A DNA stretch of 64,000 nucleotides from Octopus sinensis (GCF_006345805.1 NC_042997.1:146196001-146260000); one strand, 5' to 3'. Positions 9,040-37,918 are shown, counted from the first letter of the stretch. Numbers and translations are program-made. Notes: generated from the letters alone by a model not told the origin.

Positions 9040-10744
9040 AAAGAATAGAATTAATGTCACCCACACATTTTTTGTTGAGGACCTAAAATTATATTCTGGT
9101 AATATGATCAACAACAAGAGACAATTAGAACTAGTCACAACATTCTCACGAGATATAGGAGTGGAATTTGGGCAAGATAAACGCACATACACGATAGTCA
9201 ACCGATGAAAGATTGTCGACCAGAGAGAAAACATGTATATCAATGGCTTATTTATCTCCCTTATCTCTAATGTTGAAAGCTAGATGTACCTCGGAATCGA
9301 TGAGAGTGCTGCATACATTGGTGCTGTGACTAAAGCCAGAATAGCAAAAGAGCATTTCTCTAGACTCCGGAAGATACGGAACTCAGGGCTGTTTGTATTT
9401 AACAAGACCATATCTCACAATACTTTCGTAGCACCAGTGCTAGTGCTAACATTTGAGATACTGGACAGAACACTCGGTGAGATACGAAGCCAGAAACGTA
9501 CTGACCACCGCTAGCAACATCCACATTAACAGCGACACTGATAGGATGTATGTGAGATGAAGTGATGGTGGTAGATGCATAAGGTCAGTTCAAACAGCCT
9601 TCGAATGTCGCATTGTATCACTCAAGTAATACCTACTGTACAGTAAAGAAAGAAATAAGCACATTCCATGCATACTCTAAAGTGAGACATCTTCAGACTT
9701 GAAGAAAAACTACTGTGCGGGTACTTTGAGAATACAATTGTCTCATGCAACCCTAAGGGGGCTGGACTAGCTTACCTACACAGAAGCTTGGGAAGAAGCT
9801 GGCATCATATCAACAAAAAGCAATGCATGGATGCATATTTCGTATGCTATAGGGTAACAACAGCATTGACAGGAAGAGCAGACTTTCCTGGACCTGTAAT
9901 AGATAGATTGCATCTCACCTAGAAGGATATACCTTCGCTACCCAGAAACAGCAAACAGCTGCTAAATACCTGATAAATATGAGGGACAAAGATACCAGTA
10001 AACTTACAAAATGTGATTTAAAAAATGTCGGCTCTGCTATACCAGTGCCTCAAAATGTCTGCAGAGTACTACCTGCCCCTCAGGCATGATATATTTGCAA
10101 AGATTATTTACAATGCCATCTGCAGGAAGGACTGCGCTGACGTATACATCAAAGGCTTGTCAGGACCGGCAGGTATTCACACTTTTAAAAACAAAGAATA
10201 CTGTAGAACATCAATTCGGTACAAACATAACGGACCTGATATAGTTTTATATGACAGGGAACAAAAGTCATGCACTGTTGTAGAGGCCAGTTGCTCAGTA
10301 GATGTGAATGTACAATCAAAAGTCCAGGGAAAAGAGAACATTGATGGCGAATTAATGCGGAACTTACAGCTTTGGTACCCCGACAATGAATTCTCATTTG
10401 TACCTATCGTCATAGGTGCTTTAGATTAAGTACCAACAAATTTATACAAAAACCTAGAAATACTCGGTATGACAAAAAAAAAAGCAAAAGAAACTGACGC
10501 AAATTCTCCAAATCCAACCTATTAATGGCTCTTTGAGGATTTGTAAGACATTCCAAAACTTTTCCATGTGCAATTATGTGAATATATACACACACTTGGG
10601 TGTATGTATTGACAACTCAACCAACTCACCAACTCAACCACATGATTACAAACACCTCGAACTCTCTTAACCCAAAAGGTCTAGTCACTTTGTTAGCGAC
10701 GGCTTGAACTCTCTCAAGAACTTAAATAAAACTCAAAGAAAAAT
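9040..10744 (+). mobile_element. 5'-truncated R4/Dong-clade non-LTR retrotransposon (RT, zinc knuckle, restriction-like endonuclease), degenerate
   Basis: HIFFVEDLKLY...FSRDIGVEFGQDK (RT); YLGIDE; CLKMSAEYYLPLRHD; HNGPDIVLYD...VEASC (PD-(D/E)xK); FVPIVIGAL; flanked by (CATA)n on both sides. Confidence 0.88.
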
Positions 10745-18217: not shown

Positions 18218-18737
18218 ATGGATGTATGTATATAACACGATGTTGAACAAGAAGTTGTATATAGAAGATATGAATGCTAAAATATAAGGAAGTAGAATAA
18301 AAGTTAGAATTTAACCAAAATCCAGAAACAACAGTTCGCATCGACTATTGCCAAATTTAACCTTTTTCTAAAATCTCAGCAAATAACACTCGAACTTGCA
18401 ATGTTTAAATGCTAATATGATGACACAGGTAAAACATTTTATAGAAATAAAGTCTGTGACGCAAAAAAGCTGATAACGTGGTTACATTTTATTCCGAATT
18501 TAAAGGAGAAACGAAGAGCGCAATGCTTTTCATTTTGTTATTTTCAATAATATTAGAAAACAATTTCTCAGAGCACTTGTAAAATCATGTTGAACTGTTG
18601 GTTGTCTGCTTTGGGACATCAGAACAGTATAACTTTTCGTTGAATCTGATATTCTGAAAAGAAAAAAAAGTTATATATAGGGGGGTTACTCTATAATTTT
18701 GTAGAGCGCAAGTTTATTTTTAAACAAGAATGTTGTT

Positions 18738-19990
18738 GACAGTGACTTCGAGGTTTCAGCCATTTACGCCATCATCGGACAGCGATGCATTAGGAGTTAA
18801 TCTTGGGTTTATTTTGCCTATGTTGAGTTCAGGGCTTCCTTATGTCTGTGGGTTTGAGAGGGGTGGTAATTAGGTTTTAGGGTGAGTTGTTATGGTGAGG
18901 TGTTTGAGAAGAAATTTTTATCGATTAAATTTGGGAATATTGTTTAGAATTTATTTATATATATAGAGCTCTGACAGCAAGTGTGTATGTTTAGTCGCTT
19001 TGTTTGGTAGGCACTGGTTGTGTTAGCAGCTTAGTTATTTTTTGTTTTATTAGATTTAATTCTTTGTTTTGGCAATTTAAAATGAAAGGCAGAAAGTACA
19101 GTATTCAGGACCTTAATAACTTGGTATTCTTTTATTCTTTTACTTGTTTCAGTAATTTGACTGCGGCCATACTGGAGCACTGGCATTAGTCGAACAAATC
19201 AAACCCAGGACTTATTCTTTGTAAGTCTAGTACTTATTCTGTCGGTTTCTTTCGCCGAACCGCCAAGTTACGGGGACGTAAACACGCCAACATCAGTTGT
19301 CAAGTGATGGTGTGAGGACAAGCACAGACACACAAATACATACATACATACATACATATATATATATATATGTGTGTGTGTGTGCGTGTGTGTGTGTACA
19401 TACGATGGGATTCTTCCAATTTCCATCTAACAAATCCACTCACAAGGCTTTCTTTGGTTGGCCCGAGACTATAGTAGAAAACATTTGCCCAAGGTGCCAC
19501 GCAGTGGGATTGAACTTTGAACCATGTGTTTGGAAAGCAAGCGTCTTATCCCACGGCCACTCCTGCAGTATGTCAACTTTGTTGTAATTAAATTTTTTTA
19601 GAGGTTCACAAAAGAAAGTAAGTAGGTGGTATGTGTTAGCAGGTTAATTTCATTACGTGTTGTTGCTTTTATTTAGGGTATTTGCTATTTTTATTTGCAA
19701 GGTGGGGGTCATTACTTGGGCATGTAACGATGTTGTTAGTATAGAAAATTGTTTCTCTCCTGCTTCGAGGTTCAAACAAGGATTTAGTTAGGTGAAGAGG
19801 CTGATCTGTATGTTTCTCCCTAAGTCTTTATTGTTCTGTAAACAATTTCGTTAATATAGAGAGATTCTAGCCTTTGTGTTTTATAGAGGCTGGATTTGTG
19901 GACTGTGTGTTAATAAATATTTCTTTTATTGTTTCAGACGTGGGCATTTTATAAAGTGTTATTTTCATGATGGCGGCTCTATTTCAATAA
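18738..19990 (-). mobile_element. Old Penelope-like remnant (thumb, GIY-YIG C-terminus, 3' hammerhead), interrupted by a SINE
   Basis: Minus strand TVHKSSLYK..LYINEIVYR (about 19800-19920); ..EAL..RQNKPKINS* (about 18790-18850), parallel to EAILIHQKKPKIN at about 6.85 kb; HHR remnant at 18738-18783. Confidence 0.65.
19130..19565 (-). mobile_element. tRNA-derived SINE with internal (TA)/(TG) tract
   Basis: Reverse-complement homology to 24949-25357. Confidence 0.88.
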
Positions 19991-20458
19991 CATTAACTTG
20001 GCAGCAATATATAAACACATGCATGTTATGTGAATAATCAAAAACACATCAGCGCAAATATGCATTCATATATGAATATTAACAAGCACGCGCGCGCGCG
20101 CACACAAACACACCCATACATACATTATAGCACAAAATATATCAAACCAGTAATTTAAATAGTAGAAGATCAATAATTTGTTTAATTCACCAAAACAGAT
20201 TATAAACCGCTGTATTTTGATGCAGCAAAGAGGTCTGCCGTAAATTCCAACGCTGAAGCTGCAGAGAATGTCATTAGGTGACTTTAGATTGAGAAGGCGG
20301 GGATACAGGCTGAGATTTCTTCATCTTCGACTGGGTCAACCGGGCGAGTGTGAGGTCTGATGCTGAAAGACTCAAAATCTCTTATGACTCCTTCACAGGA
20401 ATAAGGAATATTACTGATGATGCGCCCCAGAACATTTGCGTGATGTGTCTTGGAAATA

Positions 20459-20841
20459 TCTATTATATAAAATGCGTTCTTTCTGTGTGTGTATGTCTTC
20501 TAGGATCTCGGGCATCCTCCATCCGATTGCGCTCAAATTTGATATGTAGATACCGACGGTATCAGGGCGTGTATAAGTCTTGAAAAAATTACAAAAATCG
20601 ATTCCAAGTGAGAATGCGATCGATAAAGCCATGGGAACGTGCATTTGTAAAATCGTTTTTTCTTGGAATAGAAAATAGTCTATCTTTATTTCTTCTTTTG
20701 ATGGTGTCTCAAATTTAGGCTAAATCAGTGTTTCTCAAAGGGGAGGACTATGGGACTCTCGGACAAGTTGTTTTGAGAAAATTTGGTTTAAATGTTTGAC
20801 AACTCAGCACCGTCCATTGGACGGGGGGGGCGTTTTGCTCG
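20459..20841 (+). mobile_element. Non-autonomous Helitron-like element
   Basis: A|TCTATTATATAAAATG start; 3' hairpin CCGTCC-ATT-GGACGG (20810-20824); degenerate CTCG|T end at 20838-20842. Confidence 0.6.
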
Positions 20842-20881
20842 TATATATAGCTCATAAATAAGGGCAAAAGAAAAATATTCC

Positions 20882-21220
20882 TATGCCGAGAAATAGACTT
20901 TAAATGGTTAATAACGACATATAATTCAATACTAAAAGCACGCGTCTCGAAGTTAGCTGACAGAAATTTCTAAACAAATCCCGTTATCAACGAATCGGTC
21001 CGATTTCTGAGTTAATTCATAAAGAATTTTCACGTTATCAGCGGCAAATACGTTAAGAAATAAATGAAATACTTACTTGCACACATGGAACAAGCATACA
21101 TAAAGCCATGTGTACACTTAAGTACCCCAAATATATTCAAATAGAAATTTTGCAGCACACGTGCTTTTAGTGACAAATTATATTTGGTTATTGACGATTT
21201 AAAGTCTATTTCTCGGCATA
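20882..21220 (-). mobile_element. Short element with 61-bp terminal inverted repeats and a degenerate hammerhead (copy 1)
   Basis: 20882-20942 is an inverted repeat of 21160-21220; minus-strand CTGATAA...GAAA-TCGGACCGA-TT at 20984-21047; homologous to 25385-25725. Confidence 0.7.
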
Positions 21221-21264
21221 TTTGTCATGCTGGCCACTGATAATTTTTTTGAAACAAGGATATA

Positions 21265-24200
21265 TATATATATATAAAAAAGTTGAGTTGTGGGGCACCG
21301 CACGAGTGGGATTATATAAGAAAAAAGGTTTGAAAATGCAATTTTTCTTCAACAGGTATTTGTGGAAAGACTGGCCGTACTTATATTTGGATTTTTCATA
21401 GATATGTGATTCCAGGTAGGCCATCACCAGGTTTGCATAGGTAGGTGCAACTTTCGTACCCATTGCAGTACCTGAGACCTGTCTGTAAGTGTTGTTGTGG
21501 AAATACATGAAGTTGTTTTGCAGAATAAATTTGAGGCCCTCAATTATGAATTCTTTTTTAATTCTTTCCGGGATCTCATTGGGATATTTATCCAGCCAGA
21601 ATTTATGGCTTCCAGTCCAAATTCATGTGGGATTGTGGTGTAAAGATTAATAACATCAAAAGAAACGATTAAGGTGTCTTTATCGGCATGTTTGGGGAGA
21701 TGGTTTAATAGGTCCAGGTCATCTCTTACAATACTTGGAATGTGTTTCAGTATTGGCTTTAAGATGATATCTATAAAGTTGCTAAGTCTGTGTGTTTCAC
21801 AACTTGGGCCTGCCACTATTGGTCTCAGTTTGAGATCAGTGGGATGTGGTATAGTGATGCAGGTTGAAGTGGACTTTTTGCAAGCTTCTGTGATAATTTG
21901 ACTCTTGTGTATTTTTGGAAGCCCATAGAGTGTGCTGGTTTTGCAATTAAATTTAGTAATGTAGTCGCATTCCTTTGCTGTCAAGTCATTCCGGTGTTGG
22001 TAAATGAGTGCCTTCAGATTGGTCATTGTTTTGGATTGCTGGTAGTCGACTACTCTTTCGTAGTATGCGGTATCCTCTAAAAGGAGAGATACAGAGTTTT
22101 TATATTGCTCAGTATTCATAACAACGACCGTACTACCCTTATCAGCTTCCTTTATTGTGACGTCATGATTGTCTCGTAGCGTATGGATGATTTCCCATTC
22201 TCTTTTACTGGTGTTGGGTTTCAGTTTAGGTTGTGGGAGTTCACCATAAGGGAAGTTGGAGATGTAATCGCAAAATTTGTCTAAGGTTTTGTTTTTGCCT
22301 TTTATGGGATTATAGTTGCTTTTGTTACAGACCATTGAATCGTCGATATTATTAGTTTTCCTGTCAAAAAATTCCTCTGTGAGGCGTAATTTTCTGCAGA
22401 AGTGCGAGATGTCATCCTGTATTTCCCTCAGGTTAGGGTATTGCGGAGTTGGGGTGAATTTTAGTCCTCTTGAAAGGATTTTTATTTGTGGTGTCGACAG
22501 GTTTAGGTTAGAAAGATTCACTATTTTTGGTTTTTCGGGGTTGGTATCTACCATCTGGTGTCGTGGAAACTGATGCCCTTGCCTAAAAAAGGAATCCTGG
22601 GGGTTCTTCTATTTGTGGTATTTTGCTGTATGTGATTCTGTCCCCCGTTGACATGTCTGTTGAAGAGGTTTTGGTTGTTGTGATTCTGTCCCCCGTTGCT
22701 ATGTTGTCTGTTGAGGAGGTTTTGGTTGTTCTAGGGTCTGGGTTGTTGGTGTGGCCTCCTGGAAAAGTTTTGGTTATTCCAGGGTTTGGGTTGTTTGTCC
22801 TGGGTGTAATGTTGGTTCCTTAGAGTGGGTTGGAAACTATATTCATGGTTTAGAAGTGAATCCCTATATGTTGGGGGAGAACTCTGAGTTAGGAGCGGTT
22901 TGGGTTGGAATCTACAATCATAGTTCAGAGATGGGTTTCTAAGTGATGGGTAGGATCTCCGAATCTGGAACGGTTCTTGTGTGGGTTGGGGTCTACGTTG
23001 TCTGGTAAAGTTTTGTCGTGTGATGATGGGTGTCTCGGTTCTTTTGATGGGATTGTGGTGCTGTCTGTAAGTTCTGTTGTTGTTGTTGTCGATGTTAGGG
23101 GTGGTGTGTGTTCGGTGTTTTGTGGTTGGTTTTCTTTGTTTTTGGCGAGGGGTGTGAGTTGAAGTAGATATTTTAAAATATGGGTTGCTAGAAAGGTGTT
23201 CCTTTGTGAACTCTGTTTCATAATTGGTGAACCAGCTGTTTTTTTCCATTCGCTGGAGGGATGTTATTTCTTCATCCTCGCAGTTTTTTCTCCAGAGTTT
23301 GGTGGTTTCATCAAGGAGTGCTCCTTCACAGTGTTTTGAGATTTCAATCTGCATTTCATTGTCAAGGGTCTTGGATTTTTCTTCACTGGCGTTGGCTCTG
23401 AGCCGCAAGAGTTCTACTTCCGTCTTGAATTTTTCAAAAGCTAGTTTCTCCCTGAGGTTTTTTGGTTTTCTGGTTCATTTTGGATGGGTTTTATTTGTAG
23501 TTTTCTGGGTAGGATGATAGGGGTGGAGTTGAGCCACTTTTCATAAATGTCAGCTTTGTTGTTATTTTTTATGAAATTCCAGAAGGCAAACTTACGCGCT
23601 TTGAGATTTTTACTCCAGGTGTTGTTAAGAGAGCTTTTAATTGAGAAGCAGTCTTTAGTTTGCTCCTGCTTTGGGAGCACTGCCGTCTCTATGGATTTCA
23701 TTAGGTTTTGCAGTGTTGGGATGATGTCAGGGATTTGATTGGTTGTTTTGGCCTCCATGAGTCCATTTAGGTATAAGTGCGATTGTTCGACATTGTTTAT
23801 TATGGTTGAAAGTTTCGAGGAGATTTCTTGTAATTCTTTTAGGATATTTTGGTTCATTAAAGATTCTGCTTGTTGTGATTTGGGTGGCATTTTCGGGACT
23901 CGTGTGATGTTTATATATATATAAAAAAGTTGAGTTGTGGGGCACCGCACGAGTGGGATTATATAAGAAAAAAGGTTTGAAAATGCAATTTTTCTTCAAC
24001 AGGTATTTGTGGAAAGACTGGCCGTACTTATATTTGGATTTTTCATAGATATGTGATTCCAGGTAGGCCATCACCAGGTTTGCATAGGTAGGTGCAACTT
24101 TCGTACCCATTGCAGTACCTGAGACCTGTCTGTAAGTGTTGTTGTGGAAATACATGAAGTTGTTTTGATCCCAGAAAGAATTAAAAAAGAATTCATAATT

Positions 24201-24421
24201 GAGGGCCTCAAATTTATTCTGCAAAACAACTTCATGTATTTCCACAACAACACTTACAGACAGGTCTCAGGTACTGCAATGGGTACGAAAGTTGCACCTA
24301 CCTATGCAAACCTGGTGATGGCCTACCTGGAATCACATATCTATGAAAAATCCAAATATAAGTACGGCCAGTCTTTCCACAAATACCTGTTGAAGAAAAA
24401 TTGCATTTTCAAACCTTTTTT

Positions 24422-24429
<8 letters not shown>
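21265..24429 (-). mobile_element. Young internally deleted Penelope-like element with direct and inverted partial terminal repeats, inserted in (TA)n
   Basis: Frameshifted ORF from about 23890 to 21350: NLSNLNL, LSRGLKFTPTP, IKEADKG, LYGLPKIHK, LRPIVAG, SFDVINLYTTIP, YRQVSGTAMGTKVAPTYANL; ends before YxDD, no GIY-YIG. 21265-21520 equals 23912-24167; 24167-24429 is an inverted copy. Confidence 0.93.
22631..22730. repeat. Two-copy tandem repeat of about 50 bp inside the PLE ORF
   Basis: GTGATTCTGTCCCCCGTTG...TGTCTGTTGA.GAGGTTTTGGTTGTT occurs twice. Confidence 0.85.
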
Positions 24430-24504
<75 letters not shown>

Positions 24505-24514
24505 TATATATATA

Positions 24515-24910
24515 ACCCTTAGGGGTTAGCCATATTGAAATGGCAAAAATACGTCACGATGTGTTACCGCTACTGTATATAACTAACTCTGATATTTATC
24601 ATTGTTTGATTTCACTTTTTCAATATCAGCGACAGTGGACGCTGGAAAAAGTATAAGTATTTGTGAAGGAAATCTAATTCTCGGCGACAACTATGATTGT
24701 CACACGCTGACGAGAGGTCAATACCTCGAAACTCGAGTCCGTGTGTATCATAAGTTGAAGACGGAAGGTTGACTTCCCTTTGCAAATACTGACAGGACAC
24801 AGAAAGTGTGTCTATGGCCAGCTGGAGGAGTGTGTCCTCCTGGGGCTAAAAACTACAGTAGCATCCACCCTTAGGGGTTAGCCATATTGAAATGGCAAAA
24901 ATACGTCACG

Positions 24911-24912
<2 letters not shown>
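24515..24912 (+). mobile_element. 352-bp hammerhead-containing unit with 46-bp terminal direct repeat (retrozyme-like non-autonomous element) within (TA)n
   Basis: ACCCTTAGGGGTTAGCCATATTGAAATGGCAAAAATACGTCACGAT identical at 24515-24560 and 24867-24912; TA tracts on both sides; central HHR. Confidence 0.8.
24688..24757 (+). ncRNA. Type I hammerhead ribozyme, intact consensus core
   Basis: CACACG-CTGACGA-GAGGT(CAAT)ACCTC-GAAA-CTCGAG-TC|CGTGTG; helix I extended by CAACT-ATGAT/ATCAT-A-AGTTG; predicted GUC cleavage after 24739. Confidence 0.92.
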
Positions 24913-24941
<29 letters not shown>

Positions 24942-24948
24942 ATATATA

Positions 24949-25357
24949 GGCGCAGGAGTGGCTGTGTGGTAAGTAGCTTGCTAACCAACCACATGGTTCC
25001 CGGTTCAGTCCCACTGCGTGGCATCTTGGGCAAGTGTCTTCTGCTATAGCCCCGGGCCGACCAATGCCTTGTGAGTGGATTTGGTAGACGGAAACTGAAA
25101 GAAGCCTGTCGTATATATGTATATATATATAAGTGTGTGTGTATATGTTTGTGTGTCTGTGTTTGTCCCCTTAGCATTGCTTGACAACCGATGCTGGTGT
25201 GTTTACGTCCCCGTCACTTAGCGGTTCGACAAAAGAGACCGATAGAATAAGTACTGGGCTTACAAAGAATAAGTCCCGGGGCCGATTTGCTCGACTAAAG
25301 GCGGTGCTCCAGCATGGCCGCAGTCAAATGACTGAAACAAGTAAAAGAGTAAAAGAG
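24949..25357 (+). mobile_element. tRNA-derived SINE, near-intact
   Basis: GGCGCAGGAGTGGCTGTGTGGTAAG...GGTTCAGTCCC head; tail GTAAAAGAGTAAAAGAG. Confidence 0.9.
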
Positions 25358-25384
25358 AGAGAGAGAGAGAGAATATACAACTAA

Positions 25385-25725
25385 TAAGTAGGGGCAAATA
25401 TGCCGAAATTAGACACATTGTCCATAACCATTATAATTTTTCGCATACGCACGCTACTAAAAAAAGGTCGACAGAAATTTCTAAAAAATCCATTATTATC
25501 AAATCGGACCAATTTCAGGGTTAGCTCGTAAGAACCCGCCCTTCGTCAGTGATAAATGTGGTAAATAAATAAATGAGATACTTACTCATACCCATGGAAG
25601 AAGCAAACACTAAGTCATGAGCACAATTAAGTACCCCACTTATTTATTAGTTGTTTATAAATGTAACCTTTAAAGGTATTTTTTAATATGCTGGCCATTG
25701 ATAAAAAATTTTTTCGAAAAAAAAA
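25385..25725 (-). mobile_element. Short hammerhead-bearing element (copy 2, diverged homolog of 20882-21220)
   Basis: Shared blocks TATGCCGA.A..TAGAC, GACAGAAATTTCTAAA, AATCGG.CC.ATTTC, TAAGTACCCCA, ATGCTGGCCA.TGATAA. Confidence 0.7.
25496..25555 (-). ncRNA. Minimal type I hammerhead ribozyme motif
   Basis: Minus strand TTATCA-CTGACGA-AGGG(CGGGTTCTTACGAGCTAA)CCCT-GAAA-TTGGTCCGA-TT|TGATAA; 6-bp helix I, intact core, quasi-palindromic helix III. Confidence 0.75.
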
Positions 25726-25742
25726 CCCATTTTATCCTACAT

Positions 25743-25850
<108 letters not shown>

Positions 25851-25851
25851 T

Positions 25852-25885
<34 letters not shown>

Positions 25886-26212
25886 GCAGAGAAAGAAGGA
25901 GGAGGGAGAGAAAAGGAGAGAGAAAAACAGAGAGAGAGACAGAGAGAGAAAAGAGAAAGGTGGAGAGATGGAGAGAATTGGTCATAGATAATCATGGAAA
26001 TCTACACGATTCCGGAGCACATACATTTCTAAGTACTTTACCACTTCGCTCCATGGCCTATTCTACAAAAGCATACTCGCCACTGTCACTCACTTTTCAG
26101 TAAATTTACTAGACATAAGCATTTTGTATCTGCCCTAACCTTTCTCTTGAATTTTGACTGAAACACTTGATAAGAGTATAGTCGAAGAGGAAAAGCCCTT
26201 ACCTCTGCTTTC

Positions 26213-26257
26213 TTAAATAATTTCGTTGCCATAACTCCCACTATTGAGAAAGCATAT
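26213..26257 (-). CDS. Second coding exon of the same peptide (8th Cys and stop)
   Basis: Acceptor CCCTCTTACTTTATTTCCTCAAG|ATATGC; phase-0 reading ICFLNSGSYGNEII*; donor GAG|GTAAGG at 26203/26202; 208-nt intron. Confidence 0.68.
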   Translation of the reverse strand: MCFLNSGSYGNEII

Positions 26258-26465
26258 CTTGAGGAAATAAAGTAAGAGGGTACTTTCTGCAAGTAGTACC
26301 GGGTTGCACAGAATCCTTTTTCTGTGGAAGGACATTCTCTTTAAAGTTTTGCTATTGTCAGCACTTTTGATGGCTTTTATTCAGTCACATGGACAATTAT
26401 GTAGTCAGTGTTTAATAGATTTGACAATTATGTTAATGTAATACGTTTGAAGCTTCGCTACTTAC

Positions 26466-26630
26466 CTTTGCCCTCAAGCATTCACATCTGCAATTATTTT
26501 GGCAAGTAAGGCTAAAGTTTTCCGAGCACTTTGTCACAATACATCTCGAGGTGCAATTCGGCGGAACTGCTTCAGATCCAACGAAGAGGACCAAAGATAT
26601 CAGCATCAGTTTGAAGATTAGATTGTTCAT
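26466..26630 (-). CDS. First coding exon of a small secreted cysteine-rich peptide (signal peptide plus 7 Cys)
   Basis: Acceptor TTTACAG|AAT ATG (exon starts at 26633); MNNLIFKLMLISLVLFVGSEA-VPPNCTSRCIVTKCSENFSLTCQNNCRCECLRAK; consensus donor AAG|GTAAGT at 26466/26465, phase 0. Confidence 0.75.
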
Positions 26631-26686
26631 ATTCTGTAAACATATGTATTAACATAAATATTGAAAATATTACGGGAAAATGTATG

Positions 26687-26720
<34 letters not shown>

Positions 26721-28574: not shown

Positions 28575-28975
28575 ACTGTGTGGTAAGAAGCTTGCTTTCC
28601 CAACCCCCAGTTTCCGAGACCAGTGGCACCTTAGGCAAGTGTCTTCTAAAGATTTGTGAGTGGATTTGGTCGGCAGAAACAGAAAGAAGCCCGTCGTATA
28701 TATATGTATGCATGTGTGTGTGTATTTATGTATGTATGTATGTATGTATGTATGTATTTATGTGTGTATGTGTCTGTGTTTGTCATCACTTAACAACCGA
28801 TGCTAGTGTGTTTATGTTCCTGTAACCTAACGGTTCGGCAAAAGAGACTGATAGAATAAGTACTAGGCTTACAAAGACTAAGTCCTGGGGTCGATTTCGT
28901 CGACTAAACCCCTTCAAGGCGGTACTCTAGCATGCCCGCAGTCAACTGACTGAAACAAGTAAAAGAATAAAAGAG
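28575..28975 (+). mobile_element. tRNA-derived SINE, diverged
   Basis: Homologous to 24949-25357. Confidence 0.85.
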
Positions 28976-31450: not shown

Positions 31451-31834
31451 AGGTGATCGGTTGTAATCTGGGAGTTTGGGGCTGGTAATAAGTCTCATTA
31501 CATGATTTTGAAAGGCTTTCTGTTTCTGTAATGCGACATAAGACTAGTTAACACGTAGTAGACCATATAAAACTTATCCAAAACAAAACGTATGACAACA
31601 AACAAATTTAATCCGGAGCTCAAACGTACAATGCATGAGAAACCAATAAAACAAATTTCCTAATTGCCCTACCTCAAACACAAACTCTCTTCAAAGAACG
31701 ATAGAATGATAGCTGTGAATCACAGAATCGGATTTGGTCGGTCAGACTTTGATAACAACAAAATTACACTTACTTCAAGATGGATCCCATACCACGTAAA
31801 ATGAAGCATCTACAACACATATGTCCTTCCAGTG

Positions 31835-31909
<75 letters not shown>

Positions 31910-32582
31910 AATGTGTGTGTGTACAAAAAAAAGACACTGGTGTCTGTTGAGATGTTTCATACACACACAAAAAACGAATATTGTTACTATGAACGACGAG
32001 ACGGGTAGAGAATGTTTGTTCTTGGTGTTATTGCAGCAGAGCAAATGATTATATATATATATAATACCTACTGTTTCAATGAGTGTGTATGTACATATAT
32101 ATATAACACGCTTATATGCATTTGTGATTGTCCATATCAGAAATTATCTTTACTTAAACCCGTTTTAGAGATAAAGTTGAAAGCGCTGGTTACTTACGGT
32201 AAGAAATATCAGGTTCGCGATCACTATTCAAATGATCAACAGCTTAAGATCTGAAACAAAATGATAGCCAGCTATATATAAATATATATATACACATAGC
32301 CACTCGCGCTACTCTTAAACAAATATTCATTTGCTTAGGCGTCTGTAGAACTCTCTCTCTCCCTCTCTCTCTCTCTCACCCCTTCTCTCCATCTCTCTCC
32401 TCTTCTCTCTCTCTCTTCATAAACGCATGCATGTGTTAATATACATTTCTGTGTATGAGTGTGAGTGTGTGTATGTGTGTATTGATTGAGTGATTGATTG
32501 AAATGGCAAGACAGCAAAAGAATAAAAGAGACCTCGATATTATGTAAATAGAGGAATTTATCTGTAAATGTAATATGTGACA

Positions 32583-35657: not shown

Positions 35658-36740
<1,083 letters not shown>

Positions 36741-36759: not shown

Positions 36760-37918
36760 TGTGCACTCGTTTGATATTTGGTACTTCAACATAGTTCGAC
36801 GCAAACCTGGAATCACATGAAAATGGAGAGCCAAAGCGAACAGAATAGACATCTTATACTGTTTTTTTTTTCATATTTTAAAACAGGCAAGAAAATGGTG
36901 AAACCTGGAGTAAAATATGCAATATGTAGGGGGAGGTTGCTGTTACGGAACGTGTGTGCCAGCCTGGTTTTCAAGATTTCGATTGGGAAATTCTTCGATT
37001 CAAGATGCATCTCATTCTGGCTGGTCCTCTAAGATTAACAACGACAAAATGAAGGAGGTAGTTGACACCAGACCCCGTCATACGACCAGGATGGTCGCAG
37101 ACTATTCTCCAGATGTCCAAATCGAGTGTTGGAAAACTAAGTGCATCAATTTGGTTAGTCAGTGGTCTCGATGACTGGATCCCGCAGCAATTGAATGATG
37201 CTAATGTCGTCCAACGAATTTACATCTGCGATTCGTTGCAGAAACATGAGGAAAACGATCCTTTTCTAAAAAAGTGTAATGACAGAGGGCGAAAATGGAT
37301 CGTTTATAAGTGCAAACGATCATGGGAGAAGCGCGGCGAACCGCCAGAAACAACGTCCAAAGGAAATCTTCACCAGAAGAAGATTATGCTTTCAATTTGG
37401 TTGGATTAGAAGGGTGTTATATTCTACGAGCTTCTTCTCACAGACAAAACCATAAATTCGGATGTGTACAATGACAAATAAATTATACTCAGCGATCCAC
37501 CAGAAGCATCCAGCATTTGCTAATCGTAAGGATATTGTATTTTATCACGACATTGCAGACACCACACTTCTTTGCAGACGCGAGAGAAATTACTGAGTCT
37601 TGACTGGGAAGTTTTGCCGCATCCTCTATATTCGCCTGATCTTGAGCCTTCATATTTCCACCTATTATGGTCTCTTCAAAATTGATTGAATGACAGACCT
37701 TCATCTCTGAAGAGGATGTAAAAAATTCCGCTGAAAGAGTCTTTAGCCAGAAAAGATAGGAAATTCTTTGAGTAGGGAATAATGGATTTGACCACAAGAT
37801 GGCAGAAGATACTGGGCCTAAACGGTAACGATATCACTGATTGAATAAATCACTTTGTGTTTAAAACTTTAGTCGTATTTTCGATTAAAAAACTGAACGA
37901 ACTTTTATGATCAACCCA

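Follow-up and report, generated by a model that had tools for sequence, protein, structure and literature searches.

The gene at the locus

The window (the whole 64,000-nt stretch of Octopus sinensis DNA analysed here, in which position x corresponds to record position x + 146,196,000) carries on its minus strand three coding exons for XP_029640520.1, the 90-aa "uncharacterized protein" of RefSeq gene LOC115215494. The exons were located by tblastn and their borders were read directly from the DNA (Table 1); joined, they make 273 nt and reproduce XP_029640520.1 exactly. The window also matches the O. sinensis chromosome sequence that encodes this protein (CM016859.1, GCA_006345805.1) at 100% identity across 33,225 bp, free of mismatches and gaps. 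By protein search and tblastn, the open reading frame that had been flagged in this stretch is exon 2 of the gene, and the 69-aa model of the original prediction, used as a protein query, returned a single cluster made up of XP_029640520.1 and the 77-aa XP_014779420.1 of Octopus bimaculoides (LOC106875685). What had been put forward as a possibly unannotated gene is already in RefSeq as LOC115215494, with annotated orthologues and paralogues, and nothing is new here at the level of annotation. The core of the prediction stands: exons 2 and 3 of LOC115215494 form a spliced gene for a small, putatively secreted peptide with eight cysteines, the 21-residue signal-like N-terminus is read in exon 2 and has family-conserved positions, and the further upstream exon that was expected to lie elsewhere is exon 1.

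Table 1. Features of LOC115215494 and its surroundings, in window coordinates
Feature	Position	Strand	Remarks
Exon 1, 3' part	31774..31809	-	100% identity to XP_029640520.1 residues 1-12 (tblastn and direct reading)
Exon 2	26466..26633	-	XP_029640520.1 residues 13-68
Predicted signal peptide CDS	26568..26630	-	21 residues, MNNLIFKLMLISLVLFVGSEA
Intron 2	18654..26465	-	7812 nt, phase 0, four residues past Cys7
Proposed 55-nt second coding exon	26203..26257	-	encodes ICFLNSGSYGNEII followed by a stop; judged a chance cryptic exon in intron 2
Exon 3, coding part	18585..18653	-	100% identity to XP_029640520.1 residues 69-90 (tblastn and direct reading)
Candidate polyadenylation signal AATAAA	18488..18493	-	about 92 nt past the stop codon; predicted from sequence

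Exon 2 codes for the signal peptide and for mature residues 1-34, including cysteines 1 to 7. By direct reading, it follows the acceptor tttacAG/AAT, with the AG at 26635-26634 and the first exon base at 26633, and its ATG lies at 26630, 3 nt inside this border. The original prediction had begun its span at 26636; its ATG, reading frame, seven cysteines and translation are all reproduced exactly, but the exon itself begins at 26633. At its other end exon 2 stops at the phase-0 donor AAG/GTAAGT, after 26466. Read through without splicing, the frame gives a 65-aa ORF on the minus strand (26630-26433), which runs MNNLIFKLMLISLVLFVGSEAVPPNCTSRCIVTKCSENFSLTCQNNCRCECLRAK and then VSSEASNVLH. O. bimaculoides keeps both borders of exon 2, as does a more distant octopod represented by the Logan contigs L002-L006, where they read ttattacAG/GATATG and GCTCAG/GTAAAT. 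The flagged segment is single-copy in the window and not a repeat, only a (CA)n tract at ~26680-26720 recurring. By tblastn, there is no paralogue within the 64-kb window.

The N-terminus encoded by exon 2 has the usual parts of a predicted signal peptide, with K7 in a basic n-region, a hydrophobic core of 10 residues, and Ser at -3 and Ala at -1, so placed that cleavage would fall after Ala21. Nine signal-peptide positions (M1, K7, M9, L10, S12, L13, L15, E20 and A21) do not vary within the peptide family described below, and between O. sinensis and O. bimaculoides the region that encodes it has no non-synonymous and one synonymous difference.

In RefSeq, translation starts upstream, at an in-frame ATG in exon 1 (31809-31807) that encodes MLHFTWYGIHLE and is followed by the donor GAA/GTAAGT after 31774. 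Neither the O. bimaculoides model nor the paralogues nor NP1, a relative from the blue-ringed octopus, has the resulting N-terminal extension of 13 residues; the ATG itself is also present in O. bimaculoides, and the O. vulgaris protein P0008 has an unrelated extension. Given that the extension is not common to the O. bimaculoides model, the paralogues or NP1, we infer that the functional start is the exon-2 ATG, giving a precursor of 77 aa (90 aa from the upstream ATG). The 3' part of exon 1 is then most likely 5'UTR.

Exon 3 lies at the far end of a long intron. It is preceded by the acceptor ttttttttcttttcAG, with the AG at 18655-18654, and encodes NIRFNEKLYCSDVPKQTTNSST, which includes Cys8, before a TGA at 18587-18585. 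Intron 2 contains an insertion of ~5.2 kb, made up of transposon-like and microsatellite DNA, that is missing in O. bimaculoides; the homologous intron measures ~2.56 kb in that species and ~1 kb in the paralogue LOC106875686. The O. bimaculoides orthologue (XP_014779420.1 / A0A0L8GNH2) is 90% identical, and its exons 2 and 3 correspond in colinear order, with the frame, cysteine and stop of exon 3 all kept. It is the same gene as LOC115215494, although its model begins at the exon-2 ATG (77 aa), whereas the RefSeq model of O. sinensis begins upstream (90 aa). Use of the distal exon in O. sinensis is predicted from the RefSeq model and from this conservation.

A family of eight-cysteine peptides in octopods

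The predicted mature peptide, VPPNCTSRCIVTKCSENFSLTCQNNCRCECLRAKNIRFNEKLYCSDVPKQTTNSST, has 56 residues (6.35 kDa, pI ~8.7), eight cysteines and three N-x-S/T sequons. It is basic, its cysteines are spaced C-x3-C-x4-C-x7-C-x3-C-x-C-x-C-x13-C, and exon 3 gives it a Ser/Thr-rich tail. As judged from the sequons, the peptide may be N-glycosylated at NCT, NFS and NSS. Between O. sinensis and O. bimaculoides, the mature part has a pN of 0.070 and a pS of 0.106 (ratio 0.66, from small counts), and all eight cysteines are kept. A constant signal peptide and constant cysteines, with the other mature residues changing at a near-neutral rate, are typical of secreted effector peptides.

To find relatives, we built a profile from the two orthologues and ran an exhaustive HMMER search against 1.84 billion protein representatives. 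Five proteins were returned at E<=1e-3: the query cluster, P0003 (3e-11), P0004 (1.1e-5), P0005 (4.5e-5) and the spurious P0006. P0003 is an unspliced ORF call on octopod genomic contigs. P0004 is LOC106875686 of O. bimaculoides, which falls in one cluster with LOC115217762 (O. sinensis) and CAI9716092.1 (O. vulgaris), and P0005 is a third O. bimaculoides protein. A profile search of a collection of 5.8 billion proteins added P0009, which is NP1 of Hapalochlaena maculosa (ACJ22656.1 / B6Z1Y7; E 3.3e-28). Members are thus known from O. sinensis, O. vulgaris, O. bimaculoides, H. maculosa and one more octopod, and among the proteins searched no family member was found outside the octopods. No PDB chain matched, whether searched by sequence or by profile, and the family's accessions, locus names and peptide strings are not mentioned in the literature searched.

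P0006 was set aside. This protein of 226 aa matches the exon-1/exon-2 junction peptide, is a tandem repeat in a contig labelled "crustacean metagenome", and has no DNA similarity to the window.

All members share one framework, C-x3-C-x4-C-x7-C-x3-C-x-C-x-C-x12/13-C, with spacings of 3,4,7,3,1,1,13 in LOC115215494. The seven exon-2 cysteines are invariant in every member, the conserved signal peptide ends in E-A, and Cys8 lies 12-13 residues past Cys7 in every member whose last exon is known. The gene structure is shared as well. In the window, in the O. bimaculoides orthologue and in the paralogue LOC106875686, a phase-0 intron falls four residues past Cys7 and Cys8 lies in the last exon, and the donor at this point is also conserved in L002 of the more distant octopod. 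The last exon of LOC106875686 is homologous to exon 3 of LOC115215494 (EVRLNKENC versus NIRFNEKLYC), and NP1 (ACJ22656.1) carries the same spliced junction. NP1 reportedly comes from a posterior salivary (venom) gland cDNA library. If it is a cDNA product, its junction offers transcript-level support for the exon 2-exon 3 architecture. Its sequence is reported to have been released with a survey of cDNAs from posterior venom glands of cephalopods (Fry, Roelants and Norman, J Mol Evol 2009). Taken as a whole, we consider it quite probable that the flagged reading frame is exon 2 of LOC115215494, that Cys8 comes from the distal exon 3, and that the gene encodes a secreted, NP1-like octopod peptide.

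LOC115215494 and at least one paralogue stand in tandem on a single strand, with a spacing of 44 kb in O. sinensis and 46 kb in O. bimaculoides; the nearest paralogue is ~25 kb past the window's left edge. The branch that contains NP1, LOC106875686, LOC115217762 and CAI9716092.1 shares with LOC115215494 the signal peptide, the eight-cysteine framework, the intron position and a homologous last exon. It is nevertheless a paralogous branch, 36-41% identical to LOC115215494, with x12 rather than x13 before Cys8, a longer C-terminal tail rich in His and Pro, and no N-glycosylation sequons. The picture that emerges is of a tandemly duplicated, fast-evolving family of secreted eight-cysteine peptides, seen here only in octopods, one relative of which is already in GenBank under the name NP1, given for the blue-ringed octopus.

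Structural affinities and possible function

Based on these data, the best-supported reading is that the product of LOC115215494 would be a secreted four-disulfide peptide of a glandular secretion, acting extracellularly. Translation from the exon-2 ATG would yield the 77-aa precursor, removal of the signal peptide after Ala21 would release the basic peptide of 56 residues, and this peptide would form four disulfides, with N-glycosylation possible at its three sequons. Once secreted, it could function as a compact extracellular ligand or inhibitor held together by its disulfides, and it would most likely be a component of the salivary (venom) gland secretion, like NP1. By analogy, the gland source is probably salivary or venom secretion, and a venom-type role is a fair guess because a paralogue has its orthologue in NP1 of the blue-ringed octopus. 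The readings that compete with this one are an antimicrobial and a protease-inhibitor role.

One comparison was made in the original prediction, which likened the peptide to the mussel mytilins and their CS-alpha-beta fold. The product of LOC115215494 would then be an antimicrobial peptide like mytilin or myticin, either a distant relative or a convergent analogue, and we regard this as unlikely. Mytilin-B and the octopus peptide are both secreted, basic, eight-cysteine molluscan peptides with CxxxC and CxCxC motifs, and six of the eight cysteines coincide without a gap (P ~0.0012 against shuffles, under a lenient null and for a comparison chosen post hoc). By hhalign, mytilin-B (verified against PDB 2EEM) aligns over 28 ungapped columns with P 0.0018, but with a probability of only 14.7%, which falls short of significant sequence homology. 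The spacing of the octopus peptide also departs from the mytilin framework, C-x3-C-x3-C-x4-C-x11-C-x-C-x-C-x2-C: Cys1 and Cys8 of mytilin are left without a partner, two octopus cysteines are placed elsewhere, and past Cys7 the octopus peptide has a loop of 13 residues and a tail of 12, whereas mytilin ends after two residues. The Pfam family Myticin-prepro (PF10690) matches three of the seven members (E 6.7e-4), with 20.3 bits for P0001, 20.1 for P0002 and 18.3 for the 69-aa model, all below the gathering cut-off of 28.5; without the signal peptide, the score of the mature peptide falls to 11.3 bits (E 0.41). In addition, the exhaustive HMMER search of 1.84 billion representatives returned no bivalve protein.

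The predicted structures are of too low confidence to reveal a fold. AlphaFold was run on the orthologue with a 2-sequence alignment (pLDDT 52.7) and on the mature peptide with 7 sequences (pLDDT 45.4); the two models conflict in secondary structure, and neither has a confident helix-plus-sheet core. The mytilin or CS-alpha-beta analogy is, in short, a lead drawn from sequence and not a finding.

A second possibility, slightly less likely than the first, is that the peptide is a reduced TIL domain and acts as a protease inhibitor. UniProt names three O. bimaculoides proteins (A0A0L8GNH2, A0A0L8GNV8 and A0A0L8GPL3) "TIL domain-containing protein", the octopus spacings of 3,4,7,3,1,1,13 resemble the 3,3,7,3,3,1,11 of cysteines 2-9 in the bee inhibitor AMCI (1CCV), and the first, low-confidence AlphaFold model (pLDDT 52.7) has a C-terminal beta-hairpin. 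However, all members have eight cysteines and not the ten, in five disulfides, that characterise TIL (PF01826), and the ungapped coincidence of cysteines is not significant (P 0.07). None of the seven members matches the Pfam TIL model at a limit as loose as E<=10, a small profile of solved TIL inhibitors (1CCV and LL-TIL) reached a probability of 0.75% in hhalign, and PDB sequences searched with the family profile yielded no match. The family can be assigned to none of mytilin, myticin and TIL.

The mytilin comparison also has a broader form, in which all NP1-like peptides are CS-alpha/beta host-defence molecules, related to mytilin or convergent with it; in a lesser variant, the exon proposed within intron 2 is a young, species-specific alternative terminal exon with a moved Cys8. 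We think this combined account improbable, about on a par with the TIL reading. If true, the host-defence reading would make these peptides the first such family in cephalopods.

A recent preprint describes 27 superfamilies of short secreted proteins from cephalopod salivary glands whose function is unknown, and families such as this one are candidates for those "unknown function" superfamilies of cephalopod venom work. The accessible parts of the supplements to the O. vulgaris salivary-gland proteome do not mention the family's UniProt identifiers.

The proposed mini-exon in intron 2

The original prediction had taken Cys8 from close by. It joined exon 2 across a phase-0 intron of 208 nt to a 55-nt mini-exon, and arrived at a 69-aa product ending in the 14 residues ICFLNSGSYGNEII. 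The annotated gene instead joins 26466 to 18653. Splicing does supply the eighth cysteine, as proposed, but its source is exon 3, 7.8 kb further on, and the C-terminus, the length and the last spacing of the predicted product are wrong (x5 in place of the actual x13). Of the four consensus splice sites on which the model relied, the acceptor and donor of exon 2 are those of RefSeq and are conserved; the acceptor and donor of the mini-exon find no outside support.

The signals of the mini-exon are present in the O. sinensis sequence: cctcaAG/ATATGC at 26257, a TAA at 26215-26213 and a GT after 26203. Comparison with other octopods tells against their use. At the position of the acceptor, CTCAAG/ATATGC, O. 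bimaculoides has CTCAAAGTATGC, in which the acceptor AG reads AA, an AG stands one base away and the frame is changed, and the TAA of the stop has become GAA. The 208-nt segment and the mini-exon have ~93-94% similarity to O. bimaculoides, the same as exon 2, and so show no sign of coding constraint of their own. Downstream of exon 2 in the L002 contig of the more distant octopod, no counterpart of the mini-exon was found. A collection of ~15 billion catalogued proteins contains neither the 69-aa product nor the ORF of 65 aa that is read without splicing.

How readily does such an exon arise by chance? Of 374 AG sites scanned in intron 2, 20 follow a 20-base stretch in which pyrimidines make up 70% or more. 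At five of these 20, a phase-0 tail of 3-40 residues would contain a single cysteine and no other. Since a quarter of comparable sites yield a single cysteine, the eighth cysteine at 26257 is what chance would be expected to give; where introns span several kilobases, little weight can be put on a cryptic exon close by that happens to make an odd number of cysteines even. We judge the mini-exon to be a chance cryptic exon within intron 2.

Two ways of giving it a role were weighed. It might be a minor alternative exon of O. sinensis and O. vulgaris that brings an early stop and a second C-terminal isoform. All the signals needed are there in O. sinensis, and the stop lies just 10 nt before the donor, so that by its sequence such a transcript need not be degraded. 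Yet no isoform is annotated and no protein is catalogued, the exon is not kept even in the comparison with O. bimaculoides, and nothing sets it apart from the other cryptic sites of the intron, which leaves this a distinctly improbable option, below any of the structural alternatives above. Least credible of all, to the point that we give it almost no weight, is that splicing over the 208-nt intron gives the main product, a 69-aa precursor with Cys8 in the mini-exon: a GT and an AG, a pyrimidine tract of 85% over 20 nt and an in-frame cysteine and stop are indeed present, but the acceptor is an AAG, the weakest common type, where the true site is a run of T followed by CAG, x5 before Cys8 does not fit the x12-13 of the family framework, the acceptor AG and the stop are both lost in O. 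bimaculoides, and the RefSeq model and the orthologous and paralogous genes all use the distal exon.

Exon 1 and the proposed mini-exon in Octopus bimaculoides

In exon 1 of LOC115215494 (window 31774-31809), an in-frame upstream ATG serves as the putative start of the RefSeq model and gives the protein a 13-residue N-terminal extension. The same ATG is found in O. bimaculoides (positions 2756-2791 of L001, the locus of the orthologue LOC106875685), and the extension is missing from the paralogues and from NP1, the family member of Hapalochlaena maculosa. The mini-exon of the original prediction (window 26257-26203, within intron 2) also has an O. bimaculoides counterpart, at L001 ~10375-10430. 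Read from a shifted AG, this counterpart would supply 54 nt (YAFSIVGVVATKLLKKAE) that contain no stop codon and keep the reading frame of exon 3. This open frame is probably a coincidence.

Matches in other sequence collections

Five Logan contigs of a more distant octopod, from five sequencing runs (SRR11869384/85/90/91/94), carry a diverged copy of exon 2 that has ~50% amino-acid identity and retains the MNNL start and the splice borders of exon 2. A further match came from an 809-bp ENA contig labeled "crustacean metagenome" (L009), where P0006, the product of a tandem-repeat ORF, matched GIHLENMNNL, the peptide that spans the exon-1/exon-2 junction. Given that no DNA similarity was found between L009 and the window and that the reading frame of P0006 requires TGA as a sense codon, we rejected this protein as a relative and regard the match as due to chance.

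Extra DNA in intron 2 and repeats around the gene

Within intron 2, ~5.2 kb of O. sinensis DNA (window 20933-26162) has no counterpart in the O. bimaculoides intron. The segment contains long retroelement-like ORFs, for which a Pfam search returned no matches, and these ORFs are bounded both by identical inverted arms and by a direct repeat. The segment is either an assembly artefact or a very recent, rearranged transposon. An interspersed repeat of ~440 nt is present in three copies in and around LOC115215494, with several more in the O. bimaculoides locus, and three microsatellite tracts lie near the exons. A transposase remnant of the mariner type and a nearby ORF were also identified in the window.

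Repeats and mobile-element features in and around LOC115215494
Feature	Window position	Strand	Remark
(CT)n(CA)n microsatellite	31830-31910		directly upstream of exon 1
(CA)n microsatellite	26680-26720		shortly before exon 2
(TA)n/(GATA)n microsatellite	25716-25920		in intron 2
Interspersed repeat copies	28576-28975, 24954-25359, 19128-19564		
Retroelement-like ORFs	21544-24245		
Inverted arms	21313-21575 / 24167-24429		263 nt, 100% identical
Direct repeat	21259-21520 / 23906-24167		99%
Mariner-type transposase remnant	37062-37409	+	Pfam Transposase_1, E 4.4e-8
ORF near transposase remnant	36108-36629	-	weak helix-turn-helix matches
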